Shown: one piece after another, positions 321 to 63,091 of the stretch
How positions within the stretch are numbered: position 1 is the stretch's first letter
Layout of the letters: every line of letters begins with the position of its first letter
Source: Macrostomum lignano
Taxonomy: Eukaryota
Direction: 5' to 3'
DNA: 64,000 nucleotides
NCBI GenBank assembly: GCA_002269645.1
Contig: NIVC01001518.1
Location: 1 to 64,000 of the forward strand
The notes under the pieces: model-generated
Database searches by the model: none
The model's input: only the letters and a program-made list of their open reading frames with translations
What the model was told of the DNA's origin: nothing
Program-made: the position numbers and the translations under genes

Positions 321-339
321 ACTCGGCTGCGAGCCCCAC

Positions 340-17460: not shown

Positions 17461-17825
17461 TAGAAGCTCCGTCTCGGGGAAGGCCAGTTACCAACGAAGT
17501 CAGAACTGATGCAGACACATTTGGTCGACGTGCTGATGAAATATGGAGACTTGGCAAGGCTGCACTGAGGCGCAGTGCTATTTGGCGCACAGGGGTGTAC
17601 TGAATACACTAGCGCTTATGGGAAAAATCCGACCTTCTGGCAGAATCGTCGAATATCTCGACGGTCCGAAGGGCTGGCGACTTGATTCTTGTTTGAGAAG
17701 GTGCGCAACAAAAAGTTAGCCCGTGTTCTTGAATTTCGTGTGCCTGCGTTGCTCCGTTCCGGCGCAGAAAAAAAAATTGTCAGGGGGGGGGGGAAATTTT
17801 TCCCCCCCTCTTGGTAGTTCTACTG

Positions 17826-20800
17826 TTAAGGACCAAACTGGACGAGACCAGTGCTACAAGGCGGCTATAAAGCCTTTAATTATCAGGCGTATGTGGAATC
17901 GTGTGAAAATTTTCGCTGCGAATATTTTTGATTCAAATGAACGAAATGATTGTTACAAGGAGGCAGCAAGTTGTGCCGCTGGATATCACCAATGGGAATG
18001 GGCTTTCAATTTTGCTGGAAAAGTCACCGACACGTGTCTGAGAGATCAATGTTATGCAGAGGCAGCCAAAACTGCAGTGCTTGCTGGACATTTTGACGAA
18101 GGGAAACGCCTTATTCAGCAAGTTACGGACACAAGCACGAAAGAAAAGTACTATATGGAGGCTGTAACATTAGCATCCCACAAGAGTAAATGGGATGCTG
18201 TGAAATTTCTGATTAATTCGGTTGCTACTGAAGACAACATAGATAATTTGTGTCACGCTGCTGTTGAATTTGCAACGAGGAATAAGCAGTGGGAATTTTT
18301 GACATTTCTGCTGGACAAAATAGCTGAACAAGCCACAAAAGATCAGTGCTGCATCGAAGCTACAAAGCTTGCCGTGAGCAAGCAGGAGTCTCAAAAAGTT
18401 TTAGAAATCGCGGAGAAATTTGCTGGTCAATTTGCCTTGGATCAGTGCTACATAGCAGCAGCGAAAACCCTTGTACTTGGCAACCGTTTTAAAAAATTGA
18501 CTGATTTGCTATCTCGAATCAGCGATAAAAAAGAACATGATAGTTTCTGCTTTCAGGAAGCAGAAAAAGTAATGAGACGTCGGAATCGTTCCAAAGTGAC
18601 AAGTTTATTAATTGGTAGAATTACTGACAATCATATGAAAAGGGAGTGTCGCATCAATGCAGTTTACTGTTTTGCATCAAAGGGAAATATGAAACTAGTC
18701 GAAGATCACTTGTCGAAATTTCCTACCGACCAAAAAAAGCAGTGCTACAAGATGGCTGCAAAATGCGCTGCAAACAATTGTCACCGGAAAGCGGCAAAAT
18801 TTTTCATGCAGAAAGTCAAAGATAAACATTTAAACTACGAGTGCTGCACTGAGGTGGGAAGATCTGCGGCAGCTAAGGGCCAGCTTGAAGAAATAAAATT
18901 TCTGTGTGATTGGATACAAAGTCAAACAAATGACGTTCAAAAACTTTTTGAGTTTCATAAAATTTGTGCAGTCGAGGCTTGCAATCATTTTAAAGAAAAC
19001 ATTCTTGAGTTTATTGGTCTCAAACCTGACTGGCTCTTCCAATCCAGCACCATCCTCAGCTTCACTGTAGCGATGGCCATCGAAGGCAGAAACTCTGTTC
19101 TCACCGACACCCTCTCTCGAATGCAGCCAGCTCGCATCACACAGCTGCTCCGTCTCTCCATCTCACAAAGACACGTCGCTCTTGCTGTCACACTGATCAA
19201 TGATGAGCGAGTCAGCACAGAGCATGTCGATCTGCCAGACAGCACTGGAGCCACTGCTCTCATGCTGGCAGCTGATGCAGGTCATCACGAACTCATTGAG
19301 AAACTCATCGATCTCGGTGCGTCAGTGCGTGCTGAAGACAGTCAGGGTCGGACTGCTCTGTCACGAGCGTGCGAAGCCGGTCACGTGCGAGCAGCCAAGG
19401 CTCTGATGGACAGAGGAGCGGATGCATGTCATCGAGACGGTCGGGGTCTGTCGTGTGCGCAGGTGGCACAGCTATTCGAGCAGCGGCAGGTGCTGCGGCT
19501 GCTGGATCGCAGTGGAGCGGGGTGAGTGAGGCAATAATTTCATCCATTTTAGAATAAATGGCATAAATGCGTGAAGTTCAAAACACTTCAGCCGTTAATT
19601 TTTATGTAAAACTTAGATAAAGCGTCTCCGATACACCAAATGTTTTTTTTATTCACGAATTGCAGAAGCCCAGAGGCCCGGCAGGCAGTCGCTCATCGCT
19701 TGGATTGGGGCCTCCATCGGTGAGTCTGACCGGTTCGGCTTTTGCTGCCGCATTGCTCCTTCTAACAGGCTGGCAGCTTGGGGCAGAAATTGCGGCGAAA
19801 CTTAGCAAGGTTGAGATTGGGTTGGACTGAGCGCTGCAGCAGCTGCGCTCTCAACTCTCCTGCTTTTTCTGTCCGAGCAAATCACCCACACGCATCTCGG
19901 ATCATTCCAGGTTCTCAGACGACTCTCAGCAAGACAGGTTCCTGAGCGAGGAGCTGCATCGACTGCTCAGCAATGCGAGATTCACCGAGGAGAGAGCAGA
20001 GTGTCAGCAGAACCTGGCTGACTGGCTGCAAGGAGTCGCTGGAGTTCTCACACAGGATGGCAATCGCAGGCAGATGACGGGCAGCTACGCAGAAGGCTGG
20101 GCCAACAGTCTGGTGCAAGTGAACGGCAGGACAGCTGCAGACTCGGACAATGACTGGACTGTGCTGGTTGCTGGGCAAGAGTTCCATCTGGAAGGTGGCT
20201 GCAAAGGAAAATATGGTTCCTGCAGAGACGACGCCACTCGGCTGCAGGTCACGAAGGGCCACGCACTGGTGGCAGTGGGAGCAGGTCAGTGAGGCTGGGT
20301 TCATTCTCATAATGCTTGTTGTGGTGCGAGTACTAAGTACGAGGTATAGGGTATTGAGTACTTTAATCGTATCGTATTTACGCTCGTATGTTTCAATGTA
20401 TTCCATTCTCGATCAACTCAAACCATTACGAAGCATTTAGTTCAAGGATATAAAAATAAAGCAGCAGTCAGTCGAGACTCCACAATTCTCAAATCTCATT
20501 CGCATAAACAACCCAAGCGTTCAATACACAATATTACTGAGATCGGAATGCAACTGGAAGCCCATTTTAACAGTAGAAAGACCACGCTATTTTCCCCATG
20601 GGGAAAGACCACGGGGGTGTATTACAAATACACACGACCCATTTTACGATATTTCGCAAACTATGTAAAAGTCCACCATATATATATAAATTTTTCGCCC
20701 TTTCCGACGAACTAACTTTCAAAGTCATCCGACGTCAGGATCGTCGAGATATTCAACGATTCTTGTCGAAGACACTGGTGGCAAGGACAACCAACACTAC

Positions 20801-23326
20801 ACTGTACTAACCTTTGTGGTGAATCCATATTGGCTCAATAATCTGGGTCCATTTGTCGTAGACGCCTTTTTTCTCAGCATCCCAGACACCAGGGTCTCCT
20901 TCGTCACAGTCTGGAGCATCGGCGGCGACCGTCGGGACCTTCAACAAAAGCACCCGATCGGAATCTCAGAGACGGCTGCATTCCCAAAACTGAAACGCAA
21001 GAATCCTCTTCTGTATGCAGCATTCATTCAGTAGAGATAATCGGTGAATGAAATGGACGATGGCGACCCTCTAGACTGACCTGTAGACATACAGGCGACA
21101 TTCGGGACCGTCAACGGAGTGCCGACCCGTCAGAGCGGCCCCGACGAGCTAGCTGACACCGCCAACGCCAACATCCTGCTTTTTCTATGAAGGCAGCAAA
21201 CCAGACATGTCTGCATATTATACAATGATTCTGCACCATGTTCAGCATTCAGCTCTATCTGGACGATTTCCGGGACCTTCAGCGGAGTGACATCACGCTG
21301 TCCTGACGAGCTGGCACCCCAAACATCGTGATTTTTCTATCAAGGCACCAAACCAGACATGTTTGTATATTATGCAATGCTTTTGCACCTTGTTAAATTG
21401 GAGAGTTACAGATCACGATGTTTGATCTCATCATCATCTATAATGATTGCTAATTATAGAACTCCTCGGATGTATCCATCACTTTCCCCAGTCGAACGTC
21501 TATGGTCTCAGTGTAAATTTCATTTATTTGCATCGATGCAAAGTGAGGGATACATAAATATGCATTTTTCAGTTACCGTGTAAATAACGCCGGTGTTATT
21601 GACACGGTACTGTGCAAAATAACGACTACCAAGTAAAAAATACATGTTTTCAAAGGGCAAGGGCATCGAAATTACTAGCCAAGAGAAAATCTGCAGTTTC
21701 AAACCAACCCATCTTTTCACTTGCCACAAAGCGACTCTCCGCTCACTGCGCTCTGTAGGCAGCCAACCTGCAGTGACAGCCACGGCGTGCGGTGTGCGGT
21801 CTGCACAGGACACGTGCCATGCGATCCAGTGCTGCAGCAATTTCTATAAGGACAGCAATGATATAGTTCACCTCGTGCGGGCGACCAGACCGAGCTCGAC
21901 CAACGAGCTCAGAGTGAGCTTCAGCTTCCAAGAGAAAGACATCATGAGACGGCTGAGCACAGTCCAGGGCCAGCTGTTCACACTCATCAAGTTCATCTTC
22001 AAGAGACACTTGCCGCTCACTCTGGACACACCTGGACTCAAGACCTACCATGCAAAGACTCTGCTCTTCACAATGCTAAAGAAGCATGGCACAAATCCTA
22101 AACTTGAGGCTTGGCAGCCCCACAATCTGATCGCTCTGCTCAACGAGTCTCTCGACATGATGCTGAGCTTCATCGACTCAAGCAGCTCGCCCGATGAGTG
22201 CATGCCACACTTCTTCATGCCCGACGCTCCGCTCTACTTCAAGAACGCTGGAATCGGCGGCGACTTCGACAACACGAAGGCGAGGGTTCGAGACCGACTT
22301 TGTGAGCTGAGAAGCGACATCGGCGGAGTGATTGAGCAGCTGAGGAGACTCGTGAGACCTCTGCAGTCAGAGAAGTTCTACTTTCACCCGTTCACTCTGC
22401 TGCCTCTGACAGCGCCGCCTGTTGTCACGGAGATCAGGAAAGGACGTGGCTCTCAGGAAATGTACTACAAGTTTGCAAAAGTGTACGGTGTGGTGCACCA
22501 GTGTGTGAGCGAGCTGCAGTCAGAATCGAGCAACAGAGACACCCTGATGAGGCAGCTCAGTCTCCTGCATAAGCTGCCGTGGTGCAAGTGCGCCGCCCTG
22601 TGCATGACCGCCATGGCGCATTTGAAGTTCGGAGAATCTGAGGAGGCTGAGAGACTCGCGATGGAGCTGCAGAGACATCAGGTTGAGTCTGGGTTGAGGC
22701 CACAGGATATTCAAGTGACAACCTTTAGCAAAACTGAATTGCCAGCAGACTCAGACTGGGCGTGGAGGTTCTGCCTCCCCTGCGACTCTCCGCCTCGCTT
22801 CCCATTCCTTCCCGAGTTCACGCAGACTCTGTTCACAGCCAGACTGTCGCAGCCTCTCTCCTCCCACCTGTACGTGAACTTCCGCTGCCTGAGCTGGAGT
22901 CTCCAAGCTGAGCTGCTCCGCAATCGCGCACCTGCAATCGCATTCGATCATTGGATTGAACAGCTGCTTGGAGACCCGGACTTGGAGGAGCTGCTCACTC
23001 TGGCTCACTACAGCGACTGCCGCGAGCACGTGGAGCTCAGCCTGCAGCAGATGGAGATGATCGAGAAAGAGAGACGCGTCGCCATGGAGACGCAGGACGA
23101 GGAGAAGATCGGCTGGGTCAGGCAGAAGCGGTGGCGAGTTTCGAACCGCAGTGGCAGCGACAGCGGCGCTCACCGCAGCAGGGAAGATAAGGAGCGGAGG
23201 CTGTGGGCGAGGGCGAGGCTGCAGCGAGACGGGGCCGACCTGGGTCGCCTGGTTGCCATGGAAACTGCAGCGGAGCAGAGAGACAGCTGGACTCACGCCA
23301 AGCTCAGTCGGATGAGACTGCAGTGA
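17826..23326 (+). CDS. Gene A: 33-aa helical repeats - ankyrin repeats - Mab-21/cGAS-like nucleotidyltransferase (cGLR); exons ~17826-19521, 19666-19719, 19911-20284, 21759-23326; 5' end abuts the foldback arm
   Basis: Splice phases chain in frame (GG|GTGAGT ph2; 54-nt exon ph2-2; CCAG|GTTC ph2; GCAG|GTCAGT ph1; GTAG|GC). ANK motifs 'GATALMLAADAGH' and 'GRTALSRACEAGH'. NTase 'TGSYAEGW..DSDNDW', third Asp 'QDTCHAI', Mab-21 motifs 'LRVSFSFQEK', 'LKTYHAKTLLF', 'CMPHFFMP'. Confidence 0.8.
20567..21400 (+). mobile_element. Diverged intronic element, possibly of the same TTAA|CAGTAG family as the foldback arms
   Basis: TTAACAGTAGAAAGACC at 20567. Imperfect ~150-170-bp repeats with GGACCTTCA.C and TTTCTATCAAG motifs, like the 151-bp units. 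Confidence 0.4.
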
Positions 23327-24760: not shown

Positions 24761-25489
24761 AGACTGGATAGAGGGGCTGACTGATCAGAGCACATTCCCA
24801 GGGATTACTTATATCCCAATTAACTACAATTATATAGTCAATTATACAATAATCCAGTTGATTATTGCAGACGTCAATGTAGTGACTGACACGGAACCGA
24901 GATACTATGCTGAGTAAGACTTCGGCCCCGACTTGGGCATTGATTGCGATATACGTAGAAACGTACATCCAACTACACGTACACCAACCTTGCACGTACA
25001 TCAGCTCATATGTGCATTTGGAATAAAATAGCCCGCGCAGGGAATGAGGGTATAGCCGTGTATAACAATTATGTACTACTATCATTATGACGCTGGGGCC
25101 CCGGACTAAGCAGGGGGATGCGACTTCCTGAGGGCAATGGCCCAGAGACGCGCTTTCTGACTGCTCCCCCCTTTCTGGCTACTGCGTGGCCGGCGGGAGC
25201 AGTACCTTGTTGTTGTTGTTGTTGTTGTTGTATCATTATGTTTGTTTGATTAGCTATGTACTACTACGAGCTATTATATATTTTTGTTTATTTTTTTTGT
25301 TTTTATTCAGTGTGCTGCAAAAACAACTTATTCAGGGGCACAAGTGTCATAAAATAAGCCAAGTCATGGTATAGTTGCAACAGGGACAACTTCCAACTAT
25401 ACTAAATCTCTAAGGTTTGTATGTTTGCTTGAATAAACTACTCGTACCTAGTTATCAAAATTAAGGACTCCTGGCTGTTGCTTGTTGTG

Positions 25490-26860
25490 TGTGATTGGGG
25501 AATCTGAAGGCCGTTGTGTGTGATTGGGAATCTGAAGGCTGTTGTGTGTGATTGGGAATCTGAAGGCTGTGGTGTGTGATTGAGGCATTTGAAAGCTGTG
25601 GTGTGTGATTGGGGAATCTGAAGGCTGTTATGTGTGATTGGGAATCTGAAGGCTGTTGTGTGTGATTGGGAATCTGAAGGCTGTGGTGTGTGATTGAGGC
25701 ATTTGAAAGCTGTGGTGTGTGATTGGGGAATCTGAAGGCTGTTATGTGTGATTGGGAATCTGAAGGCTGTTATGTGTGATTGGGAATCTGAAGGCTGTGG
25801 TGTGTGATTGAGGCATTTGAAAGCTGTGGTGTGTGATTGGGGAATCTGAAGGCTGTTATGTGTGATTGGGAATCTGAAGGCTGTTGTGTGTGATTGGAAA
25901 TCTGAAGGTTGTTGTGTGTGATTGGGGAATCTGAAGGCTGTGGTGTGTGATTGAGGCATTTGAAAGCTGTGGTGTGTGATTGGGGAATCTGAAGGCTGTT
26001 ATGTGTGATTGGGAATCTGAAGGCTGTTGTGTGTGATTGGGAATCTGAAGGCTGTGGTGTGTGATTGAGGCATTTGAAAGCTGTGGTGTGTGATTGGGGA
26101 ATCTGAAGGCTGTTATGTGTGATTGGGAATCTGAAGGCTGTTGTGTGTGATTGGAAATCTGAAGGCTGTTGTGTGTGATTGGGAATCTGAAGGCTGTGGT
26201 GTGTGATTGAGGCATTTGAAAGCTGTGGTGTGTGATTGGGGAATCTGAAGGCTGTTATGTGTGATTGGGAATCTGAAGGCTGTTGTGTGTGATTGGAAAT
26301 CTGAAGGTTGTTGTGTGTGATTGGGGAATCTGAAGGCCGTTGTGTGTGATTGGGAATCTGAAGGCTGTTGTGTGTGATTGGGAATCTGAAGGTTGTTATG
26401 TGTGATTGGGGAATCTGAAGGCCGTGGTGTGTGATTGAGGCATTTGAAAGCTGTGGTGTGTGATTGGAAATCTGAAGGTTGTTGTGTGTGATTGGGGAAT
26501 CTGAAGGCCGTTGTGTGTGATTGGGGAATCTGAAGGATGTTGTGTGTGATTGGGAATCTGAAGGTTGTTGTGTGTGATTGGGGAATCTGAAGGCTGTTAT
26601 GTGTGATTGGGAATCTGAAGGCTGTTGTGTGTGATTGGGGAATCTGAAGGTTGTTATGTGTGATTGGGGAATCTGAAGGCCGTGGTGTGTGATTGAGGCA
26701 TTTGAAAGCTGTGGTGTGTGATTGGAAATCTGAAGGTTGTTGTGTGTGATTGGGGAATCTGAAGGCCGTTGTGTGTGATTGGGGAATCTGAAGGATGTTG
26801 TGTGTGATTGGGAATCTGAAGGTTGTTGTGTGTGATTGGGGAATCTGAAGGCTGTTATTT
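25490..26860. repeat. 28-29-bp minisatellite with higher-order structure (GTGTGTGATTGGGAATCTGAAGGCTGTT / GTGTGTGATTGAGGCATTTGAAAGCTGTG)
   Basis: Direct tandem units. Confidence 0.95.
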
Positions 26861-26874
26861 GTGTGGCGTACATG

Positions 26875-27186
26875 TACATGTATAATGCTGAAAATTCGAA
26901 TAAATGGTTATTTAATTGTAACTTTATAGATTCATCTCAACTATAGTTGTTTTGCAGCACAAAAACATACTATGGAAGGTTGGCTTACTTGGTTATAATA
27001 ATCCCGCAATCAGGACGTTTGTTTGAAGTTAGTTTTTGTTTAAACTAGGGGATCTATTCAGCAAGCACAAAAGAACGAACAAATGGACCCAGCAGCCAAC
27101 GAGTGGTGGCTAATATAGCTAGTTGGTGACAATGCTTATACATGCCAAGAGTCAAGAGAAATGTTTAAAAAATCGAATTACAGCTA
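26875..27186 (+). repeat. About 310-bp dispersed repeat, copy 1
   Basis: Colinear with 38773-39078 (ATCCCGCAATC..AGGACGTTTGTTT..AACAAATGGACCCA..TGCCAAGAG). Confidence 0.8.
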
Positions 27187-27199
27187 AGTTCAGGCGTGT

Positions 27200-28490
27200 C
27201 GTAAGTATGTGCCTGTGGCGCTAAAATGAGTGCCTGTGGCGCTAAAATGAGTGCCTGCGGCGCTAAAATGGTGCCTGTGGCGCTAAAATGAGTGCCTGTG
27301 GCGATAAAATGGTGCCTGTGGCGCTAAAATGAGTGCCTGTGGCGCTAAAATGGTGCCTGTGGCGCTAAAATGAGTGCCTGTGGCGCTAAAGTGAGTATCT
27401 ATGGCGCTAAAATGAGTGCCTGCGGCGCTAAAATGTGTGCCTGTGGCGCTAAAATGAGTGCCTGCGACGCTAAAATGAGTGCCTGTGGCGCTAAAATGAG
27501 TGCCTGTGGCGCTAAAATGAGTGCCTGTGGCGCTAAAGTGAGTGCCTGCGACGCTAAAATGAGTGCCTGCGACGCTAAAATGAGTGCCTGTGTCGCTAAA
27601 AATGAGTGCCTGCGGCGCTAAAATATGTGCCTGTGGCGCTAAAATGAGTGCCTGTGGCGCTAAAATGAGTGCCTGTGGCGCTAAAATGAGTGCCTGTGGC
27701 GCTAAAATGAGTGCCTGTGGCGCTAAAATGGTGCCTGTGGCGCTAAAATGAGTGCCTGCGACGCTAAAATGAGTGCCTGTGGCGCTAAAGTGAGTATCTA
27801 TGGCGCTAAAATGAGTGCCTGCGGCGCTTAAATGTGTGCCTTTGGCGCTAAAATGAGTGCCTGCGACGCTAAAATGAGTGCCTGTGGCGCTAAAATGAGT
27901 GCCTGTGGCGCTAAACTGAGTGCTTGTGACGCTTAAATGGTGCCTATTGTGCTAAAATGAGTGCCTGCAGTGCTAAAATGAGTGCCTGTGGCGCTAAAAT
28001 GAGTGCCTGCGACGCTAAAATGAGTGCCTGTGGCGCTAAAGTGAGTATCTATGGCGCTAAAATGAGTGCCTGCGGCGCTAAAATGTGTGCCTTTGGCGCT
28101 AAAATGAGTGCCTGTGGCGCTAAAATGGTGCCTGTGGCGCTAAAATGAGTGCCTGCGACGCTAAAATGAGTGCCTGTGGCGCTAAAGTGAGTATCTATGG
28201 CGCTAAAATGAGTGCCTGCGGCGCTAAAATGTGTGCCTTTGGCGCTAAAATGAGTGCCTGCGACGCTAAAATGAGTGCCTGTGGCGCGAAAATGAGTGCC
28301 TGTGGCGCTAAAATGAGTGCTTGTGACGCTAAAATGAGTGCTTGTGACGCTAAAATGGTGCCTATTGTGCTAAAATGGTGCCTGTGGCGCGAAAATGAGT
28401 GCCTGTGGCGCTAAAATGAGTGCTTGTGACGCTAAAATGGTGCCTATTGTGCTAAAATGGTGCCTGAGGCGCTAAAATGAGTGCTGACAA
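27200..28490. repeat. 21-bp minisatellite (GCGCTAAAATGAGTGCCTGTG), followed by a MITE-like tail ending ATGGCGACGCCCCTG at 28593
   Basis: Direct units; the same family occurs at 29375-29435 and 58505-58990. Confidence 0.95.
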
Positions 28491-31912: not shown

Positions 31913-34900
31913 ATGGAAGCGACGGGCACTGCTACAACTACATCTCAGTTGGATGTGCTAAAAGCCGTCTTAGAGACAATACCTGACAAAAGCTTGAGAG
32001 ATCAGTGCTGTTTCAAAGCGGCAAAATCGGCTTCTGTCAAAGGTCAACTGGATCTGGTAATATATCTTGTTTCGGAAATCTGTGACCCAAATTTAAAAGA
32101 CCAGTGCTGCATTGAGGCAGCGAAGTCTGCTAGTCGAGGAGAAGTGGTAGAATTTCTCATCTCGTGTATCTCAAGTCCGGATCAGAGAGCAAATCTCCGT
32201 TTCCAATGCGCAGTCACGGCTTGCTCTCGTCTTCACGAAGATGTCGTTGCCTCCCTCGGCCTCGAGCCCGACTGGCTCTTCCAATACAGCACCATCCTCA
32301 GCTTCACTGCTGAAATGGCCATCGAAGGCAGGAACTCTGTTCTCACCGACACCCTCTCTCGAATGCAGCCAGCTCACATCACACAGCTGCTCCGTCTCTC
32401 CATCTCTCAAAGACACGTTGCTCTTGCTGTCACAATTGCTGTCACACTGATCAATGATGAGCGAGTCAGCACAGAGCATGTCGATCTGCCAGACAGCACT
32501 GGAGCCACTGTTCTCATGCTGGCAGCTGATGCAGATCATCACGAGCTCATTGAGAAACTCATCGATCTCGGTGCGTCAGTGCGTGTTGAAGACAGGCAGG
32601 GTCGGACTGCTCTGTCACGAGCGTGCGAAGCCGGTCACGTGCGAGCAGCCAAGGCTCTGATGGACAGAGGAGCGGATGCATGTCATCGAGACGGTCGGGG
32701 TCTGACGTGTGCGCAGGTGGCACAGCTATTCGAGCAGCGGCAGGTTCTGCGGCTGCTGGATCGCAGTGGAGCGGGGTGAGTGAGGCAATAATTTCATCAA
32801 TTTTAGAATAAAATGGCATAAATGCGTGAAGTTCAAAACACTTCAGCCGTTAATTTTTATGTAAAAACTTAGATAAAGCGTCTCCGATACACCGAATGAT
32901 TTTTTTATTCACGCATTGCAGAAGCCCAGAGGCCCGGCAGGCAGCCGCTCATCGCTTGGATTGGGGCCTCCATCGGTGAGTCTGACCGGTTCAGCTTTTG
33001 CTGCCGCATTGCTCCTTCTAACAGGCTGGCAGCTTGGGGCAGAAATTGCGGCGAAACTCAGCAAGGTTGAGATTGGGTTGGACTGAGCGCTGCAGCAGCT
33101 GCACTCTCAGCTCTCCTGCTTGAGATGCCAGTCTGAGTGCTGCAGCAACTGCACTCTCAGCTCTCCTGCTTGAGATGCCAGTCTGAGTGCTGCAGCAACT
33201 GCACTCTCAGCTCTCTTACTTTTTCTGTCCGAGCAAATCACCCACACGCATCTCGGATCATTCCAGGTTCTCAGACGACTCTCAGCAAGACAGGCTCCTG
33301 AGCGAGGAGCTGCATCGACTGCTCAGCGATGCGGGATTCATCCAGGAGAGAGCAGAGTGTCAGCAGAGACTGGCTGACCGTCTGCAAGGAGTCGCTCGAG
33401 TCCTCACACAGGATGGCAATCGCAGGCAGATGACGGGCAGCTACGCAGAGGGCTGGGCCAACAGTCTGGTGCAAGTGAACGGCAGGACAGATGCAGACTC
33501 GGACATTGGCTGGACTGTGCTGGTTGCTGGGCAAGAGTTCCATCTGGAAGGTGGCTGCGACAGACATTGGCAGCCATTGGCAGCCAGATGCACCACTCGG
33601 CTGCAGGTCACGGAAGGCTACGCGCAGGTAGCAGTGGGAGCAGGTGAGTGAGGCTGGGTTCATCACCAGAATGTTACTTCTATTTTGCAGTCCTATCATT
33701 TAGCTTTTATTCGTATGTATGTAATTGGAATCCAAAATTCGCAACCGAATGGCGTCCAGGCGTACATCAAATTATAGTCCAAACTGGCCCTAACTGCTCC
33801 GCTTCATATATTTTTCATATTCGAGCACAATGATAGAAAACCATGTATATAGATATTTTTATTAATTTTTTTATTTGTTTTATTATTTAAATACTTTTTT
33901 GGTTCTTCAGTTTGTGTTAACATACCAGTACTAGATACAAATATTCGCAGTCATAGAAAAGCCTAAAATGCCATATCAAAGTACTTTTCACAGGCTCTAA
34001 AGCGACTCAGGAATAGTATCAATGGATATAATTAGGAGAATATCAGCCGTTTGAAACCCATTAATCCGCTCTGCAGGCAGCCAACCTGCAGTGACAGCCA
34101 TGGCGTGCGGTGTGCGGTCTGCACAGAGCACGTGCCATGCGATCCAGTGCTGCAGCAGTTTCTGTGAGGACAGAGTTGAAAAACTGTTTCCATACAGTGA
34201 TAAAGTTCATCTTGTGCGGGCGACCAGACCGAGCTCGACCAACGAGCTCAGAGTGAGCTTCAGCTTCCAAGAGAAAGACATCATGAGACGGCTGAGTACA
34301 GTCCAGGGCCAGCTGTTCATACTCATCAAGTTCATCTTCAAGAGACACTTGCCGCTCACTCTGGACACACCTGGACTCAAGTCCTACCATGCAAAGACTC
34401 TGCTCTTCTTCATGCTGGAAAAGCATGGCAAAGATCCTGAAACTGAGGCTTGGCAGCCCCACAATCTGATCGCTCTGCTCAACGAGTCTCTCGACATGAT
34501 GCTGAGCTTCATCGACTCAAGCAGCTCGCCCGATGAGTGCATGCCGCACTTCTTCATTCCCGACGCTCCGCTCTACTTCAAGAACGCTGGAATCGGCGGC
34601 GACTTCGACAACACGAAGGCGAGGGTTCGAGACCGACTTTGTGAGCTGAGAAGCGACATCGGCGGAGTGGTCGAGCAGCTGATGAGTCTCCTGAGACCTC
34701 TGCAGTCAGAAAAGTTCTACTTTCACCCGTTCACTCTGCTGCCTCTGACAGCGCCGCCTGCTGTCACGGAGATCAGGGAAGGAAGTGGCTATCCAAAAAT
34801 TCACTACAAGTTCGCAGACGTGTACATTGTGGTGCACCAATGTGTGAGCGAGCTGCAGTCGGAATCGAGCGACAGAGACACCCTGATGAGGCAGCTCAGT

Positions 34901-36422
34901 CTCCTGCATCAGCTGCCGTGGTGCAAGTGCGCCGCCCTGTGCATGACCGCCATGGCGCATTTGAAGTTCGGAGAATCTGAGGAGGCTGAGAGACTCGCGA
35001 TGGAGCTGCAGAGACATCAGGTTGAGTCAGGGTTGAAGCCACAGGATATTCAGAGAGAAATTGAGATGATCACAACTGGAATGCTAGCAGACTCAGACTG
35101 GGCGTGTAGGTTCTGCCTCCCCTGCGACTCTCCGCCTCGCTTCCCATTCCTTCCCGAGTTCACGCAGACTCTGTTCACAGCCAGACTGTCGCAGCCTCTC
35201 TCCTCCCACCTGTACGTGAACTTCCGCTGCCTGAGCTGGAGTCTCCAAGCTGAGCTGCTCCACAATCGCGCACCTGCAATCGCATTCGATCATTGGATTG
35301 AACAGCTGCTTGGAGACCCGGACTTGGAGGAGCTGCTCACTCTGGCTCACTACAGCGACTGCCGCGAGCACGTGGAGCTCAGCCTGCAGCAGATGGAGAT
35401 GATCAAACAAGAGAGACGCGTCGCCATGGAGACGCAAGACGAGGAGAAGATCGGCTGGGTCAGGGAGAAGCTGAAAAAATTAGACCCACCTTTCTTGAAG
35501 ACATGGGAAAAGGTTCAGTTTCTAGGCAGAGGAGGCTTTGGTGAAGTTCACGAAATTGTCACAGATAAAAACGTAAGCTGTGCCGCAAAGATTCTAAAGA
35601 TGCCGTCGCAGCTTGGAGCTTCCTCTAACTCGAAAAGCAGCGAAATAGAAAAAATCATAGCAGGTGAAAGAAATCTGTATGGATTGCAGCATGACAACAT
35701 AGTCAAGTTCCTTCATATAGCTCAGACAGAGCCTGCGACTATCGTTGTCTTCACGGAGCTGCTGAAGGGTCAAACCTTAGAGGCATTTATTAACAAGGAG
35801 CCTCTTAAAGACAGAACCACACGAGAGTTCTGCAAGCAGGTAACTTAAGCTGTTTATTACTGATCTATTATGCCATTTCCAGATTGCATATTTTTCATTT
35901 TTCAATGCATGAATAATTCAGATCTGCAGCGCCCTGGCCTACATTCACAATCGGAAGCAGCCAGTGATTCACCGGGACATCAACTGTAGCAATATAATTG
36001 TACTTGAAGACAGCCGGAAAATCAAGCTGATTGACTTCGGCCTGTCAATTATACTGAAGCAGTCGATGAGCCACATCTCATCCAGCAGTCAGTATCCCAA
36101 GGGCACTCTGAACTTCATGGCGCCAGAGCTGCTCGGATCAGGGGGATCGGACAGCTTGCAGTACAGCAGACAGTCAGACATCTGGGCGTTCGGCTGCTCC
36201 GTCTACCAGATGGCCACTGGGGCCAGACCGCTTGGGCACACGGGCAACATTTTCCAAATGGCACTGATACTATCCCAGTCCGACGCGCCCCCTCTGCCTG
36301 ACTGTTGCTCCTCAGAGCTGCAGAATTTTTACGGCTGCTGCACCACTCGAAACCGCCAGGACAGAAAGTCCGCGTCGGAGCTGATGGAGCACCCGTATCT
36401 GGTTACCATGGATACGATGTAG
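31913..36422 (+). CDS. Gene B: short helical repeats - ankyrin - cGLR-like pseudo-nucleotidyltransferase - STE11/MAP3K-like Ser/Thr kinase; exons 31913-32775, 32922-32975, 33267-33643, 34077-35839, 35922-36422
   Basis: Same splice sites and phases as gene A. The Mab-21 domain runs in frame into 'GRGGFGEVH..CAAK..GERN..HDNIVKF'. AAGCAG|GTAACT..TTCAG|ATC then gives 'HRDINCSN..KLIDFG..GTLNFMAPE..SDIWAFGC'. NTase acidic positions read SDIG and QST. Confidence 0.85.
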
Positions 36423-42544: not shown

Positions 42545-43575
42545 CGGCCCTCTTCTTCCGCCCTCTACATCCGCCCTCTGCATCCGCCCTCTACATCCGC
42601 CCTCTACATCCGCCCTCTACATCCGCCCTCTACATCCTCCCTCTACATCCGCCCTCTACTTCCGCCCTCCCTCCACCCTCTACATCCGCCCTCTACATCC
42701 GCCCTCTACATCCACCCTCTACATCCGCCCTCTACATCCGCCCTCTACATCCTCCCTCTACATCCGCCCTCTACTTCCGCCCTCCCTCCACCCTCTACAT
42801 CCGCCCTCTACATCCGCCCTCTACATCCGCCCTCTACATCCTCCCTCTACATCCGCCCTCTACTTCCGCCCTCCCTCCACCCTCTACATCCGCCCTCTAC
42901 ATCCGCCCTCTACATCCGCCCTCTACATCCGCCCTCTGCATCCGCCCTCTACATCCGCCCTCCCTCCACCCTCTACATCCGCCCTCTACATCCGCCCTCT
43001 ACATCCGCCCTCTACATCCGCCCTCAACATCCGCCCTCTACATCCACCTTCTACATCCGCCCTCTATATCCGCCCTCTACATCCGCCCTCTACATCCACC
43101 CTCCCTCCACCCTCTACATCCGCCCTCTACATCCGCCCTCTACATCCACCCTCTACATCCGCCCCCTACATCCGCCCTCTACATCCGCCCTCCCTCCACC
43201 CTCTACATCCGCCCTCTACATCCGCCCTCTACATCCGCCCTCTACATCCGCCCTCTACATCCGCCCTCTACATCCTCCCTCTACATCCGCCCTCTACATC
43301 CGCCCTCTACATCCGCCCTACCTCCAACCCTCTACATCCGCCCTCTACGTCCGCCCTCTACATCCACCCTCTACATCCGCCCTCTACATCCGCCCTCTAC
43401 ATCCTCCCTCTACATCCTCCCTCTACATCCGCCCTCTACATCCGCCCTCTACATGTACATCCACCCTACCTCCAACCCTCTACATCCGCCCTCTACGTCC
43501 GCCCTCTACATCCGCCCTCTACATCCGCCCTCTACATCCGCCCTCTACATCCGCCCTCTACATCCGCCCTCTGTC
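42545..43575. repeat. ~1-kb 13-bp minisatellite (CCCTCTACATCCG) immediately upstream of the fibrinogen-related gene
   Basis: Direct; explains ORFs 42510 and 42532. Confidence 0.95.
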
Positions 43576-43606
43576 TCCGCCATCTTCCGGCGCCAAACCT
43601 GACATT

Positions 43607-43812
43607 CCACACTCAGACCAAATGCAGCTCCAACCCGACATTCCACACTCAGACCAAATGCAGCTCCAACCCGACATTCCACACTCAGACCAAATGCAGC
43701 TCCAACCCGACATTCCACACTCAGACCAAATGCAGCTCCAACCCGACATTCCACACTCAGACCAAATGCAGCTCCAACCCGACATTCCACACTCAGACCA
43801 AATGCAGCTCCA
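43607..43812 (+). repeat. 36-bp tandem repeat spanning the start codon of the fibrinogen-related gene
   Basis: GACATTCCACACTCAGACCAAATGCAGCTCCAACCC x5 plus a partial; in-frame MQLQPDIPHSDQ units. Confidence 0.9.
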
Positions 43813-44832
43813 AGTCGCTCGTCAAGTCGCTCTGCTGCTGCTGCTGCTGGCTGCAGTGCTGCATCACGTGACCGAAGCCTCCGCCGACTCCGGGCAGATG
43901 TGGCAGTCGAGCCGCGAGAGCCTCCGACTACGAGGCCGTGAAGTCGCTGCCAGCCCGAGGCGAGTTTGAATGCGCGGTGGGTGCCAGCAGCGACTCCGCT
44001 GTGCAGCTGATGTCGTTCAGCGCCAGCTCCGGCCTGTGCGCTCACTTCAGGTGCCGCCTGGGCCTGAGCCACTGCAGCAAGTGCCGCAATGCGAACAAGG
44101 GAGCTCAGCGGGTGCGGGTGAGTCACTCAGTTGGACATGTCAGCGTTAACGCGGAGTAGAAGAACTGGCGCACCTGTGCACCTGTCACTTTGCAGACAGC
44201 CGGCAGTGACTGCTGGACCACCGTGCAGCACAGGCTGTCCGGCTCAGTGGACTTTTACCACAACTGGACTCAGTACCAGAGCGAGTTCGGCGAGGGACCC
44301 GACGGAAACTACTGGATCGGTGAGTGCATCCCGGATCTGCTGCATTCGCTTGCTTTTCCAGTTCGGATTTCAATGACAAACAGCGCCATGACGCCCGCAT
44401 CTTCCCAGGCCTGAACTCTCTCCACGCTCTCACTGCTTCTGCTCCTCGGAAGCTGAGGATCCTGATGAAGGCGTGGAACGACTCTGAGCACTGGGCCGAG
44501 TACTCCAGCTTCTCCGTGGGTCCCGAGTCCGACAACTACCGACTGAGCGTCTCCGGCTTCTCCGGCAGCGCCGGCATCGGCGACAGCCTCACCTACAGCA
44601 GCGGCATGCAGTTCACCACGAAGGACGCCGAGCACGACACCGATCCTACTGGCAACTGCGCAATCCGTTATAAAGGTGCCTGGTGGTTCAAAGACTGTTT
44701 CCACACCCACCCGAACGGAGAGTACAAAAACTCATCTGCTGCCATCGGAGGTGCTCATGCAGAAGAGTTATTTGGCATGGCAACTTTGGCGCTTACTACT
44801 CGCTGAAGGAGATCGAGATGCTGCTTCTGTAG
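43802..44832 (+). CDS. Secreted fibrinogen-related domain (FReD) protein with Cys-rich, possibly PAN-like, N-terminal region; exons 43802-44117, 44196-44319, 44409-44832; two apparent frameshifts (~43912, ~44766)
   Basis: Signal peptide '[18 protein letters not shown]'. FReD motifs '[30 protein letters not shown]', '[10 protein letters not shown]', '[24 protein letters not shown]'. After the -1 shift: '[18 protein letters not shown]'. Splice phases 0 and 1 are consistent. Confidence 0.8.
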
Positions 44833-45650: not shown

Positions 45651-47034
45651 GAAAAAATCGCGCATTTTGAACAGTTTTTTTGCACTTTTAGGTAGGAAGA
45701 CTTGAGTTTAGGAAATTTTAAGGTAGCCTATGACACTTTCCGTAGTGAATTTAGGGCGGGTGCAAAATTTGGTGTAATTTGGTCGAGCGGTTTGGGAGTC
45801 CATAGTGAAGTACGAGGGTTGTCCCAGAAATAGCGGGAAAGACCGGTACAGAGGCTGACTGTGATATGCGAATTTGATGCAACTTGCGTCATAAGTAGAA
45901 AAAAATTCAACGATTGTTTTGCTTTTTAAATGGGGTAAAAATGTCAATTCATTCAAATGTTATGCCTATAATTAGAACAAGGGGTAGGGGGTAGAGTTAC
46001 TCCAAGTCGAGCCTAGTATGCTGACCATAGACTAAACTTTTGATGTTAAGTCAACACCATCGATTCGAAAACAAAAGCAAAGGAAGAAGCTGAAGAGAAA
46101 CAAAAAAGCACATAAGCTCTCGAAAAAAGAAGAAGCTAATTTGAAGCAGAAGCAGAAGCAGAACTTCTGCAGCAATTACTTCTCCACTTAGCAAGTACTC
46201 AATATTCACGTCTTGTACGCCAGGGCTTGTCCTTGGTTGTACTAAAACTTCACTTGCTTGTTGTACATCGGTCGTGTGACTTGATTGTTCATTTGATGAC
46301 AGTGTGAATTGGATTAATTTTAGTAAATTACGAGCGTACAAGTGACGAATAAATTATTGATTTGTTTAAATCGGCCCAATGCGGATGCGATTTGCAGACT
46401 GAAACAAACAAAAAGTGCTAATTCACGGTTTAAAGCAAAAACGGGAGCTGAAAGCAGTATATTGAATCATTCAATGGTCATCCCATTTACATGTGCATGC
46501 ATCTAAATTTATCACTATCATTTAAAAACTTCCAAAATTTGGCTTAATCCGGTTCGGCCTCAATAGCATAACTTGATCGGGCAGTCGCGGCCCTCCCCCT
46601 ATCCATCTCTCTCCCCTCGTGTCTCAGCTGCCGCCCCTTCACCCCTGCCCACTGACAATGCACTTGCTATGCCGAGCACGCAGCCACAGTCAGCTCTCAT
46701 TGTTTAACTCAGCAGAGCTCGCAGCATCTCACTGCTCCTGCATCTCTCACCCCGCTGAGCAGAGCAGCTGCCGGGCCCACTGGCACCCAACCAGGCCTCA
46801 GACACAACCGCTGGGTTAGAGAAGAGAATCGGCCTCAGTCCATTTAAACAAATTTCTCTGCACAGGGAGAGCTCAGAGATTTCAGTCCGTGACAGAGGGA
46901 CTTTTGCTGCTGCTGCTGAGCTGGCAGGCAAATTCGCTTGAAGAAGAGCAAAGCACTCAGTTTAAAGTCGTGTGGAACAGCTGCGGCAGACAGCAGATCG
47001 GCAGAGAAGCGCTGCTAGGAGAAGCTGTGTAGCC

Positions 47035-49711
47035 ATGGCAACACAGATGGAGCGGAAGCTGAGAGCGGCGCTGGAGGCTGGAGACAGCGAGGAGCTGCAG
47101 CGACTGTGCGGTGAGGTCGGCAGCAACATCGAGCTGGAGGTGGGCGGGTTCGACACGCAAGACTTTCCCTTAGAAGAGCTTCGCATGCCGCTGGCCCATC
47201 ACGTGGCCTGCAAGCCGGTGAGCTCGTCGTGCCTGGAGCTGCTGATTAACAGATTCGGACTCGACTGTCTGACACATGGAAATGATAGGGGCGAGACTCC
47301 AGTGGACTTGGCTGCCCAGCATCAGGACGAATCTTGGATGGAGCTGGTTAAAGAGAAGGGAGGCAGAGGCTGCTTGAGAATTGTCGATGGATGGAGACAG
47401 TCAGTCGCTCACTTTGCCGCTATGAACAGAAAAAGCAACTCTTGTCTAAGGTGGCTGGTGAAGGAGCTCGGCAGCGACTGTCTCACAGCTCCTGACAAAC
47501 TCGGTGACATGGCCGTCCATTTTGCCGCTAAGCATCAGGGCATCGAGTCACTGGAGTGGATCAAGAGACAGATCGGAACTGACTACTTTCGGCAGAAGGG
47601 GGGTTCTGGAAGAGAACAGCATTTCACTTTGCTGCTCAGAAGTCTGACAATTCAAATCTGAAGTGGCTGGTGAGGGAGCTCGGCAGCGACTGTCTCACAG
47701 TTCCTGACAAACACGGTGACACGGCCGTCCATTTGGCCGCTCAGCATCAGGGCACCGAGTCGCTGGAGTGGATCAAGAATCAGATCGGAACTGACTGCTT
47801 TCGGCAGAAGGAAAAGCGGGAAAGAACAGCATTTCACTTTGCTGCTGAGAAGTCTGACAATTCAAATCTGAAGTGGCTGGTGAAGGAGCTCGGCAGCGAC
47901 TGTCTCACAGTTCCTGACAAATACGGAAACATGGCCGTCCATTTAGCCGCTCAACATCAACCAGTCGACTCTCTTCAGTTCATTTTTGACCAAATTGCAG
48001 CCGAAATGTTCAGCTTGAAGAACAACAGGGGCGAAACACCGACTGATGTTGTTGAGAGTAATCGGTGCCGCACAGACCAGTCAGCAAAGCGGGCCTGGAT
48101 TTCCTCCACGCAGCCGCAGCTCGAAGCCTCTAGGCCTCCCGCTGGCAGCTCAGCGCCGACTGCCGCCTCAGCTGGGTGAGTCCTGACTGAGAACTGCTGC
48201 CTCAGCTGGGTGAGTCCTGACTGAGAGCTGCTGCCTGACACTTAAAATACTGAAAATATTGTTTGGCGAAAATTCATTGCACCTTGATGATCGGCGCCCT
48301 GAAATTCTCAGCAGCGCCGCAGTCAAGCGAGGGCGTCATGAATCTGTCACTGCAGCTCCTCATGGGACCCCGAACCCCCACCCAAAGCTCAATCTGCAGG
48401 AATTTTTTAGCACAAAGCATCAGCGAGTTTAAGTGCCATCAAACTCTCCGAAGTTTCAAACTCTCCGATTTTAGTAGAAATGTACTTAATGTGACGTTCC
48501 AAATATTGTCACTTAAATGACTTCAGAGCCTCCAATCTCTTCGTGGGACCGCAATCTCCCGATTGCGTCTCTAATGTCCATATAGCGCCACCCAAAGCTC
48601 AATCTGCAGTGGCTTCTTATTTACCACAGGGTGTGTACATGTACAAGATTTACTTCGACAAGCCTCTTGTACTGGCGTGAGTTCATTCAGCTCACACTGC
48701 TAAAGCACACAGCTACAGCACACACAGCTAGAGCATGCAAATCATCCCTAATTGCCTCAATTCGCATCCCATCAGACCCGAAGGCCCCCCGCTCCTGGAG
48801 CGCTGGGACGCCGTTCGTCTCATCGGCCGCGGAGCCTTCGGCGAAGTCCACGAAGTTCGAACTGACACGGGCGTCACGTGTGCTGCCAAGACTCTCAGAC
48901 TGCCTGTGCAGCTCGGTGATGAGCTGCCCTCTGTGAGCACAGAGATCCACAGAGCTATCGAGAGCGAGAGAAACCTGTGCCGACTGCGGCATCCCAACGT
49001 CGTCAGGTTCTTGCACATCGCTCAGCCGGAGCCCGCCACAGTCGTTGTATTCATGGAGCTGCTGGACGGCCGAAGCTTGGAGAGGTTTATCGACAACAAG
49101 CCGCTGGACGAGCTGACGATTCGAGACTTCAGCGAGCAGGTGAGCATTGTGCATCCTTGATGCTCCTGTTCCATGTTCCCATGAATGATGACTGCTCACT
49201 GACCGACCGCTCGCAGATCTGCCGCGCGCTGCTCTACCTGCACAGCCGGCAGCCGCCCGTGATCCACAGAGACATCAACTGCTCGAACATAATTGTTTGT
49301 GCTGACAACACGCGAATCAAGCTGATCGACTTCGGCCTGTCAATCAAGCTGGAGCAGTCAGTCAGCCACATGTCAGCCTCCACTCAGGCACCCAAAGGCA
49401 CTCTGAACTTCATGGCGCCGGAGCTGCTCGGAGCGGGAGAGTCGGACAGCGTGCAGTACAGCAGAGAGTCGGACATCTGGGCGTTCGGCTGCTCGGTCTT
49501 CCAGATGGCCTCCGGCGCGAGGCCGTTCGCAAACGCCAAAAGCATGTTAGGAATGGCCAAGCTGATCGACAGGAAGGGCGCCCCCGCCCTGCCGGACGGC
49601 CGGTCCGCAGAGCTTCAGGATTTCTACAGCCGCTGCACCGCCATGGATCGCAGGCGGAGAAAAGCCGCACAGGAGCTGCTTGAGCAAGAGTTCTTGAGGA
49701 AAAACCTCTGA
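47035..49711 (+). CDS. Gene C: ankyrin repeats - STE11/MAP3K-like kinase; exons 47035-48175 (apparent frameshift in the G-run at 47598-47603), 48776-49139, 49217-49711
   Basis: GCCATGG start. ANK units 'GETPVDLAAQH', 'GDMAVHFAAKH', 'GDTAVHLAAQH'. GG|GTGAGT (ph2) joins CATCAG|A (ph2). Kinase 'GRGAFGEVH..CAAK..ESERN', 'HRDINCSN', 'KLIDFG', 'GTLNFMAPE'; the kinase intron is at the same position as in gene B. Confidence 0.82.
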
Positions 49712-51806: not shown

Positions 51807-51935
51807 TGAAATCCTGTCGATCAGCTTGGCCATTCCTAACATGCTTTTGGCGTTTGCGAACGGCCTAACGCCCGAGGCCATCTGAAAGACCGAGCAGCCG
51901 AACGCCCAGATGGCCGACTCAGCCATAGTCTACGA
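51800..51935 (-). pseudogene. Inverted fragment of the gene C kinase C-lobe ('ESAIWAFGCSVFQMASGVRPFANAKSMLGMAKLIDR', then stop)
   Basis: Near-identical reverse complement of about 49465-49572. Confidence 0.8.
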
Positions 51936-55044: not shown

Positions 55045-56520
55045 GAGATGGGAGAGAGGGAGGGAAAGAATGGAAAAGATGGGAGAGAGGGAGGGAAAGA
55101 ATGGGGAAGATGGGAGAGAGGGAGGGAAAGAATGGGGAAGATGGGAGAGAGGGAGGGAAAGAATGGGGAAGATGGGAGAGAGGGAGGGAAAGAATGGGGA
55201 AGATGGGAGAGAGGGAGGGAAAGAATGGGGAAGATGGGAGAGAGGGAGGGAAAGAATGGAAAAGATGGGAGAGAGAGAGGGAAAGAATGGGGAAGATGGG
55301 AAAGAGGGAGGGAAAGAATGGGGAAGATGGGAGAGAGGGAGGGAAAGAATGGGGAAGATGGGAGAGAGGGAGGGAAAGAATGGGGAAGATGGGAGAGAGG
55401 GAGGGAAAAAATGGGGAAGATGGGAGAGAGGGAGGGAAAGAATGGGGAAGATGGGAGAGAGGGAGGGAAAGAATGGGGAAGATGGGAGAGAGGGAGGGAA
55501 AGAATGGGGAAGATGGGAGAGAGGGAGGGAAAGAATGTGGAAGATGGGAGAGAGGGAGGGAAAGAATGGGGAAGATGGGAGAGAGGGAGGGAAAGAATGT
55601 GGAAGATGGGAGAGAGGGAGGGAAAGAATGGGGAAGATGGGAGAGAGGGAGGGAAAGAATGGGGAAGATGGGAGAGAGGGAGGGAAAGAATGTGGAAGAT
55701 GGGAGAGAGGGAGGGAAAGAATGTGGAAGATGGGAGAGAGGGAGGGAAAGAATGTGGAAGATGGGAGAGAGGGAGGGAAAGAATGGGGAAGATGGGAGAG
55801 AGGGAGGGAAAGAATGGGGAAGATGGGAGAGAGGGAGGGAAAGAATGTGGAAGATGGGAGAGAGGGAGGGAAAGAATGTGGAAGATGGGAGAGAGGGAGT
55901 GAAAGAATGGGGAAGATGGGAGAGAGGGAGGGAAAGAATGGGGAAGATGGGAGAGAGGGAGGGAAAGAATGTGGAAGATGGGAGAGAGGGAGGGAAAGAA
56001 TGTGGAAGATGGGAGAGAGGGAGGGAAAGAATGTGGAAGATGGGAGAGAGGGAGGGAAAGAATGGGGAAGATGGGAGAGAGGGAGGGAAAGAATGGGGAA
56101 GATGGGAGAGAGGGAGGGAAAGAATGTGGAAGATGGGAGAGAGGGAGGGAAAGAATGTGGAAGATGGGAGAGAGGGAGTGAAAGAATGGGGAAGATGGGA
56201 GAGAGGGAGGGAAAGAATGGGGAAGATGGGAGAGAGGGAGGGAAAGAATGTGGAAGATGGGAGAGAGGGAGGGAAAGAATGTGGAAGATGGGAGAGAGGG
56301 AGGGAAAGAATGGGGAAGATGGGAGAGAGGGAGGGAAAGAATGGGGAAGATGGGAGAGAGGGAGGGAAAGAATGGGGAAGATGGGAGAGAGGGAGGGAAA
56401 GAATGGGGAAGATGGGAGAGAGGGAGGGAAAGAATGGAAAAGATGGGAGAGAGGGAGGGAAAGAATGGGAAAGATGGGAGAGAGGGAGGGAAAGAATGGG
56501 GAAGATGGAGCTCTGAAGGA
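55045..56520. repeat. ~1.5-kb 31-bp polypurine minisatellite (GAGAGGGAGGGAAAGAATGGGGAAGATGGGA), preceded by (GACGA)n
   Basis: Direct; explains ORFs 54959-56578. Confidence 0.97.

Positions 56521-56979: not shown

Positions 56980-63091
<6,112 letters not shown>

Follow-up and report, generated by a model that had tools for sequence, protein, structure and literature searches.

cGAS-like receptors (cGLRs) are regarded as enzymes that respond to a bound ligand by making a diffusible nucleotide signal. OASL, which joins an inactive OAS-like nucleotidyltransferase (NTase) to ubiquitin-like domains, has lost catalysis, gained a C-terminal signaling module, and works by protein interaction. PKR and RNase L fuse a sensor to a kinase or pseudokinase and use ligand-induced dimerization, and RNase L carries N-terminal ankyrin repeats. 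Here, we describe gene B, in which a predicted cGLR is joined in frame to a protein kinase domain. It lies at 31913-36422 on the forward strand of a 64,000-nucleotide stretch of DNA (the window; contig NIVC01001518.1, positions 1 to 64,000, assembly GCA_002269645.1) from the free-living flatworm Macrostomum lignano, the source of all close protein matches to the window. The NTase of gene B has kept its fold signature but lacks two of its three catalytic acids. We propose, with a probability of about one-half, that gene B is a genuine chimeric gene, specific to this lineage, and that it encodes a messenger-independent sensor-kinase.

The ankyrin-bearing (Ank) cGLR family, with ankyrin, tetratricopeptide repeat (TPR), and tandem fusions, has already been published (Li et al. 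2023, PMC9980059), and the screening panel of that study included five M. lignano proteins, among them PAA68676.1. The active-site motif was given as h[QT]GS-X8-20-[DE]h[DE]h-X50-90-(h)[DE]h, and mutating it abolished synthesis in four tested cGLR enzymes; 15 active enzymes were reported, and the main text names none from M. lignano (PMC9980059). PAA68676.1 (BOX15_Mlig016402g1) is P0008 in our protein set and is 82% identical to gene B. Together with PAA93208.1, another Ank-cGLR of that study, it shares with gene B an ankyrin N terminus, exon structure, the MTGS motif, motif spacing, and 76-85% identity over the NTase, Mab21_C, and helical regions. However, these Ank-cGLRs have complete D-I-D and Q-D motifs and end after the helical domain, whereas in gene B the motifs are D-I-G and Q-S and a kinase follows the helical domain. 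The cGLR part of gene B had no match above 87% identity in the protein databases searched.

Like MAB21L1/2 and the shrimp LvMab21 proteins, gene B has a Mab21 fold without essential NTase residues. Shrimp LvMab21-1/2/3 do not produce cGAMP; they bind IKK-epsilon and activate it in trans (PMC12928593). Output in shrimp is by direct kinase activation rather than cyclic-dinucleotide synthesis, and we propose that gene B acts alike. The shrimp kinase is a separate TBK1/IKK-family protein, whereas the gene B kinase is covalently fused and WNK/STE-like, and the recent ancestry of gene B lies among active-looking cGLRs rather than in the MAB21L clade. OASL differs from gene B in its NTase subfamily and its appended domain, and it has no kinase. 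For PKR and RNase L, the likeness is in the proposed mechanism only, and the sensor parts are nonhomologous. Our searches of the literature on cGLRs with Macrostomum and on cGLR pseudoenzymes found no match, and the word “kinase” is absent from the parts of the Li et al. 2023 supplements that were available. As far as searched, the dead cGLR-kinase fusion, the dead cGLR-caspase fusions presented below, and the link between both are undescribed in the literature and databases.

Structure of gene B and its NTase active site

Gene B has five exons that together give an unbroken open reading frame (ORF) of 1185 codons in one frame. The encoded domains are, in order, DQCC-type repeats, ankyrin repeats, a linker, the NTase core, Mab-21_C, a helical domain of ~260 amino acids (aa), and a protein kinase. 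The two upstream exons (31913-32775 and 32922-32975) were placed by the splice pattern of paralog P0001. The donor of exon 1, G/GTGAGT, overlaps the apparent TGA stop of the ankyrin ORF. A preliminary description of the locus, made from the DNA letters, had reported an intact frame over 33267-36422, and we recovered this region as three exons with GT-AG borders (33267-33643, 34077-35839, and 35922-36422) in a single frame. The features of gene B are as follows.

31913-32775, + strand: exon 1, with the ATG, two DQCC-type helical repeats, and then ankyrin repeats (Pfam Ank_2, E 3e-17)
32922-32975, + strand: exon 2, a 54-nucleotide linker exon (SPEARQAAAHRLDWGLH) with AG/GT borders; the identical peptide occurs in P0001 and P0021
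33083-33215, + strand: 50-bp tandem repeat in intron 2, 2.7 copies, 97% identical
33267-33643, + strand: exon 3, N-terminal half of the NTase core, with MTGS at 33430-33441 and D-I-G-W at 33502-33513
34077-35485, + strand: exon 4, cGLR part, with Q-S-T at 34124-34132, Mab-21_C at ~34364-34573 (Pfam, E 1.8e-7), and the family-specific helical domain at ~34691-35485
35486-35839, + strand: exon 4, kinase N lobe, with GRGGFG at 35525-35542 and the beta3 Lys AAG at 35588-90 (Pfam Pkinase, E 6e-9)
35840-35921, + strand: intron within the kinase domain (GT..AG), at the position of the intron in gene C, an Ank-kinase gene of the window
35922-36422, + strand: exon 5, kinase C lobe, with HRD at 35970-78, Asn at 35982-84, DFG at 36033-41, APE at 36120-28, and the stop TAG at 36420-22 (Pfam Pkinase, E 7.9e-29)

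The 50-bp repeat of intron 2 is present as one copy in gene A, the sister of gene B in the window, and as an array at a paralog locus (L003, 10865-11097).

It is established chemistry that two-metal catalysis by Pol-beta-fold NTases depends on acidic residues. The M. lignano family pattern, MTGS-X20-DIDW-X58-QDT, fits the published cGLR motif spacing, and the context of its third Asp, D-T-C-H-A-I-x-C-C, aligns with D-L-I-P-A-F, D-I-V-Y-S-Y, and D-I-I-V-A-L of other cloned M. lignano cGLRs. Gene B retains MTGS and the first Asp (GAC 33502-04), 20 residues past the GS. The second acid of the DxD motif is changed to Gly (GGC 33508-10, in DSDIGW) and the third Asp to Ser (AGC 34127-29, in AQSTCHAI), giving Q-S-T where paralogs have Q-D-T. 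At these two altered sites, D-x-D and x-D-x, respectively, are found in ~85 of the ~95 M. lignano paralog domains that were informative. The two altered codons agree with the preliminary description, as do those of gene A (GAC 20146-48 and GAC 20152-54 in DSDNDW; GAC 21809-11 in AQDTCHAI) and the motifs DADIDLTV and PAVDIVRA of a third window paralog, gene D (minus strand, about 59755-57118).

With two of the three active-site acids absent, the gene B NTase departs from the published active-site criterion for cGLRs. By the chemistry of Pol-beta NTases, it would be unable to perform canonical two-metal synthesis of a nucleotide messenger. Membership of the family is indicated by the identity to the cGLRs listed by Li et al., which extends over the NTase core and the C-terminal helix bundle, and at the level of the fold by a Mab-21_C helix bundle that follows a Pol-beta-type GS...DxD core. 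A profile search of the PDB with the family matched only cGAS, cGLR1, MAB21L1, and MB21D2 (cGAS and cGLR1 at E 5e-5). An AlphaFold2 (AF2) model was built on a 15-sequence family alignment, and its significant Foldseek matches were all to MAB21L1, Sp-cGLR1, and cGAS (best E 2e-5, template modeling [TM] score of ~0.33), with the NTase core at a predicted local distance difference test score (pLDDT) of <50. The Pfam model for the N-terminal Mab-21 NTase did not match the M. lignano family even at E 10. Taken together, gene B is a member of a known predicted-cGLR family that departs from two of three active-site criteria.

The ~260-aa domain that follows Mab-21_C in gene B is found in all paralogs and was modeled with confidence (pLDDT 85, predicted TM score 0.87). 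It had no match in Pfam, and its best Foldseek match in the PDB was not significant (E 0.19) and TPR-like at most.

Kinase domain and the join

The preliminary description had called the kinase in frame and intact looking, and the family alignment bears this out. The domain contains GRGGFG, AAK, ERN, HRD, the Asn of INCSN, DFG, and APE, with the beta3 Lys and the alphaC Glu kept. The domain is 54-63% identical to other members of its family and 58-60% identical to the kinase of gene C. Six singleton changes fall at family-invariant columns, none of them catalytic, compared to 8 and 11 in other divergent members. This family is large and specific to M. lignano, and it consists mainly of Ank-kinase genes or tandem kinases.

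The best PDB matches of the gene B kinase were WNK1/3, SLK, and ASK1 (E 1e-25 to 1e-23), and it has in common with WNK kinases the signature H-x-R-x-(x)-P-[VI]-IHRD-x-x-C-x-N-I. WNK kinases have no beta3 Lys, and their catalytic Lys comes from the Gly-rich loop. In contrast, gene B keeps the beta3 Lys typical of non-WNK kinases (VSCAAK, 35588-90) and has no Lys in GRGGFGEV, which rules out WNK membership. It also has Asn in place of Lys two residues after HRD (HRDINCSN, Asn 35982-84). This replacement is common to the entire M. lignano subfamily, including gene C, whereas more distant M. lignano Ank-kinases (PAA85900.1 and PAA60035.1) have HRDIKCSN.

The alignment across the junction is abrupt. 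Mab21-family homology stops at 35485 and kinase-family homology begins at 35486, with no intron between them (...AAATTAGA followed directly by CCCACCTTTC...), and the join lies within the kinase N-lobe exon rather than at an exon border. The Mab21 tail is not homologous to the kinase exon, and there is no repeat able to mislead an assembler. Because the junction is inside a kinase exon and the kinase intron is conserved, we take the fusion to be at the level of DNA and not an artifact of the gene model. A junction of this kind would be expected if a genomic deletion had removed the DNA separating a cGLR gene from a kinase gene downstream of it.

The kinase C lobe of gene B is 100% identical to UniRef A0A1I8I7J9 (P0040). 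We rejected this entry as independent proof of the fusion, as in its helical part it agrees with gene A and most paralogs rather than with gene B, and it skips the kinase N lobe. It confirms only that the C-lobe sequence of gene B exists.

Paralogs, caspase fusions, and neighboring genes

In a first paralog set, 33 of 34 sequences had SD-I-D, and the third Asp was kept in all that covered the third motif. The family profile was then used to align a set of 103 Mab21 proteins of M. lignano. A C-terminal enzyme domain was present in four of them: a kinase in gene B and a caspase in PAA59752.1, PAA80948.1, and PAA93319.1. The other 99 had no match to a kinase or caspase domain. All four effector-bearing proteins lack exactly the second DxD acid and the third Asp and keep the first Asp. 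The preliminary description had held that only the kinase-bearing paralog had lost acids; this holds within the window and for close paralogs, but it does not extend to the family as a whole, where the caspase fusions and some unfused paralogs have lost them too. The three caspase fusions are as follows.

PAA59752.1 (P0146), locus L009, 3001-6651: cGLR-Ank-caspase
PAA80948.1 (P0271): cGLR-Ank-caspase
PAA93319.1 (P0147), locus L010, 3001-11307: cGLR-Ank-caspase

In these proteins, the Mab21 and helical scaffold is followed by a second ankyrin block and then by Peptidase_C14 (E 3e-25 and 3e-27). The active site reads D-[IM]-N-W with E-S-F or Q-T-T. Their genes are compact with short introns, and SHG and QxCR motifs are kept, which we read as the probable catalytic His and Cys of the caspase. 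The scaffold is 40-44% identical to that of gene B, and an intact-looking C-terminal effector is again present, although the caspase comes after a second ankyrin block while the kinase of gene B is joined directly. The two caspase-fusion lineages are only 33% identical to each other in the cGLR part and are still open, which implies that their architecture is old and maintained. Gene B, in contrast, split from gene A at a synonymous divergence (dS) of ~0.07. Dead-cGLR-effector fusions thus persist in the M. lignano genome. We propose a dead-cGLR-effector group whose members combine, in one ORF, the Mab21 and helical scaffold with an enzyme domain at the C terminus and have lost both the second acid of DxD and the third Asp; these features are found together in gene B, PAA59752.1, PAA80948.1, and PAA93319.1.

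No further Mab21-kinase fusion emerged when 1.84 billion representative proteins were searched exhaustively with HMMER. P0142, a candidate at 1003 bits, was ruled out since it has three tandem kinase domains.

The neighboring features of the window are as follows.

17723-23326, + strand: gene A, sister Ank-cGLR without a kinase; exons 17723-19521, 19666-19719, 19911-20284, and 21759-23326
46966-49711, + strand: gene C, ankyrin repeats and a kinase of the gene B kinase family; identical to UniRef A0A1I8I663
51813-51920, − strand: inverted kinase C-lobe fragment of 36 codons, with a protein nearly identical to gene C
56983-63133, − strand: gene D, divergent Ank-cGLR, 30% identical to gene B, triad kept

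Gene A has a polar Asn at the hydrophobic middle position of its D-N-D motif, keeps Q-D, and has a 7-aa deletion right after the third motif. Its alternative tail, KRWRVSNRSG...SRMRLQ, occurs also in P0005 and P0008, while other paralogs have KLERLD...KRKAESD; the two tail types look like frame variants of one sequence.

Gene D comprises ankyrin repeats (63133-61730), an NTase (59755-59472), and a Mab21_C and helical part (58452-56983), all on the minus strand. It had been used as an intact comparator in the preliminary description. The triad is indeed kept, but 1 bp is lost in a run of G near 59560, between the GS and DxD motifs. At 59555-59573 (minus strand), the frame changes between GSYAEGW and GNSLSG, the DNA reading GGATGGGCAAC where GGATGGGGCAAC is expected, with one G missing. 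This is either a true frameshift, making gene D a pseudogene, or a homopolymer assembly error.

The inverted kinase fragment at 51813-51920 is a remnant of local rearrangement. At the left edge of the window, two ORFs at 250-2125 (minus strand) have matches to the APPL-family BAR domain (E 1e-7 and 3e-10) and look like exons of an unrelated gene. Long satellite arrays occupy 25483-28484, 42547-43813, 55046-56540, 59919-60826, and other positions. Their units include 29-bp x48, 21-bp x61, 13-bp x80, 31-bp x48, and (TCTA)x226, and they produce long spurious ORFs on both strands.

Divergence, competing explanations, and meaning

We estimated ~27.5 private nonsynonymous changes over ~476 codons in the gene B lineage. 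Two hits among the three catalytic codons would have a p of ~0.01 even under neutrality, a post hoc value that assumes independent hits. At otherwise invariant columns, gene B has 13 singleton changes, the most of any paralog (4-11 in the others). Of these 13, 12 are in the NTase/Mab21 core, which in nine other paralogs holds 42 of 74 such changes (Fisher p 0.015). This clustering fits a relaxation of constraint that would be confined to the core. Between genes A and B (18965-23129 and 32207-35471), exons differ by 6.2% and the NTase exon by 9.4%, compared to 2.9% (10/341) in the alignable flanking introns (p 0.017). An excess of exon over intron divergence suggests diversifying selection or exon-limited ectopic gene conversion.

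Our model for the origin of gene B has the following steps. The starting point would be an ankyrin-repeat cGLR belonging to the expanded family that Li et al. 2023 catalogued. A deletion in the genome would then have fused its last exon, with the frame preserved, to the kinase domain of a neighboring member of the WNK/STE-like, M. lignano-specific Ank-kinase family. The NTase has kept its fold signature and GS motif while losing the second DxD acid (Asp to Gly) and the third Asp (Asp to Ser). The ankyrin, dead-cGLR, and helical parts may then serve as a ligand-binding, clustering scaffold, whose activation could bring tethered kinase domains together for trans-autophosphorylation. The sensor would in this way be wired straight to its effector with no diffusible nucleotide. 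The caspase-bearing paralogs would have undergone a parallel conversion, with gene B the youngest case. The preliminary description had likewise proposed a noncatalytic module that controls the kinase. The loss of the acids and the in-frame kinase were upheld, and the association within the family was added; the control itself we infer from the association of acid loss with an effector in cis and from the shrimp Mab21 precedent.

Several observations weigh against this model. Pairwise dN/dS, the ratio of nonsynonymous to synonymous divergence, is 1.04 between genes A and B and 1.40 in the NTase exon, compared to 0.63-0.80 in the rest of the family; the pairwise values are high throughout (0.63-1.04). 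The ratio for private substitutions (pN/pS, against five paralog loci) is 0.85 for gene B, 0.84 for gene A, and 0.21-1.15 for five other paralogs. Since the value for gene B equals that of gene A and lies within the family range, purifying selection on gene B is not demonstrable, and private substitutions likewise cannot separate it from gene A or the family as a case of branch-specific selection. If conversion was limited to exons, the two Asp losses are no longer independent hits. The association of acid loss with effectors is also imperfect. Unfused P0030 lacks catalytic residues (NVN), P0150 and P0154 have G-I-D and T-S-T without a visible effector (these gene models may be incomplete), and an unfused gene at locus L011 has D-I-N with the third Asp kept. 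By our estimate, only two to three independent fusion events are involved, with a lineage-level association of p ~0.02. Gene B is single, with no orthologue or second kinase-fused copy in the loci and proteins searched. Seven other Mab21-family loci in assembly GCA_002269645.1 lack a kinase within 10 kb, and no Mab21 copy lies near one kinase-cluster locus; on these loci, we rejected a general genomic linkage of the two families. The window is rich in rearrangements, as seen in the gene D frameshift, the inverted kinase fragment, and the many satellites. The Lys to Asn change in the catalytic loop across the kinase subfamily means that kinase activity is not assured, and the modeled NTase core is of low confidence.

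The L011 gene (1152-4693, BOX15_Mlig021195g2 region) is a close paralog, 79% identical to gene B, with the odd changes CC to WG and VHLV to VDLV. It is a case of sporadic active-site erosion without effector fusion.

The main rival to our model is that gene B is a young chimera, left behind by a local deletion in a gene family with many duplicates, and is either selectively neutral or decaying. Removal of the normal C-terminal tail would have relaxed constraint, the Asp codons would have been lost by drift or by conversion from a dead paralog, and the ORF would be open through youth. We regard this as a serious contender, although somewhat short of an even chance. The dN/dS and pN/pS values are as it would predict, and the exon and intron divergences fit ectopic conversion with nonindependent hits. 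Dozens of redundant Ank-cGLR paralogs exist in M. lignano, and aberrant ones are at hand in sister gene A (D-N-D and the 7-aa deletion beside the third motif), in the L011 paralog with its D-I-N and odd substitutions in the absence of fusion, and in gene D with its frameshift and nearby kinase fragment. However, drift leaves other facts less well explained: 1185 codons and four introns are intact, as is every kinase catalytic motif; changes at conserved columns are concentrated in the NTase core; two of the three catalytic codons were hit; and the long-maintained caspase fusions lost the identical two positions. This last correspondence is also hard to reconcile with gene B being a decoy or dominant-negative regulator of active Ank-cGLR paralogs, acting by ligand competition or mixed oligomers with an incidental or modulatory kinase. 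OASL and inactive OAS paralogs are a precedent for such action, the ankyrin, spine helix, and helical domain are 80-93% identical to those of active-looking paralogs, and the loss is limited to catalytic residues. Still, a decoy would explain neither the retention of all kinase motifs nor the loss of catalysis specifically in effector-bearing paralogs, and we consider it improbable.

Two further explanations were considered. Base-call errors at the two codons or a chimeric assembly join would be an artifact, for which one can cite at least one likely homopolymer indel in the assembly (the G run of gene D) and the older model A0A1I8I7J9, which pairs the gene B kinase C lobe with a gene A-type helical part, so that the join is not independently confirmed. 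Both changes are substitutions (GAC to GGC and GAC to AGC), unlike the gene D indel, and the join is in frame between unique, nonhomologous sequences with no misleading repeat, making an artifact very improbable. Slightly less credible again is an NTase that is still catalytic through alternative metal ligands, using the first Asp and a gene B-specific Asp at RTDADSD. The private Ala to Asp change (A75D) is four residues upstream of the first Asp, and MTGS and the first Asp are kept. However, the published criterion needs three acids, and motif mutation abolished synthesis in four enzymes (PMC9980059). P0035 moreover has RTDADSD with an intact DxD, which implies that A75D in gene B is not compensatory by design.

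Gene B may be one instance of a wider pattern. We suggest, tentatively and as something that could well prove wrong, that M. lignano repeatedly made the cGLR scaffold into a second-messenger-independent sensor-effector, each time by losing the identical two acids of the NTase site and by gaining an enzyme in cis. That enzyme would be a caspase in two or more old lineages and a kinase in gene B, which would be the youngest case and would have fused only a short time ago. Ligand-induced ordering or oligomerization of the cGLR part would then activate the effectors by induced proximity. If true, this would be a cGLR-based analogue of inflammasome/apoptosome or PKR logic.

Should gene B prove merely a drifting chimera, it would still mark the raw material for such fusions, and the caspase fusions would be worth study regardless. 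M. lignano is a model with RNA interference and transgenesis. Its family offers natural cGLR scaffolds without catalysis that are joined directly to a kinase or caspase. If these fusions function, kinase autophosphorylation or caspase cleavage would be a simple readout for finding the ligands of the flatworm family, and the activation step of a cGLR would be usable without any second messenger.

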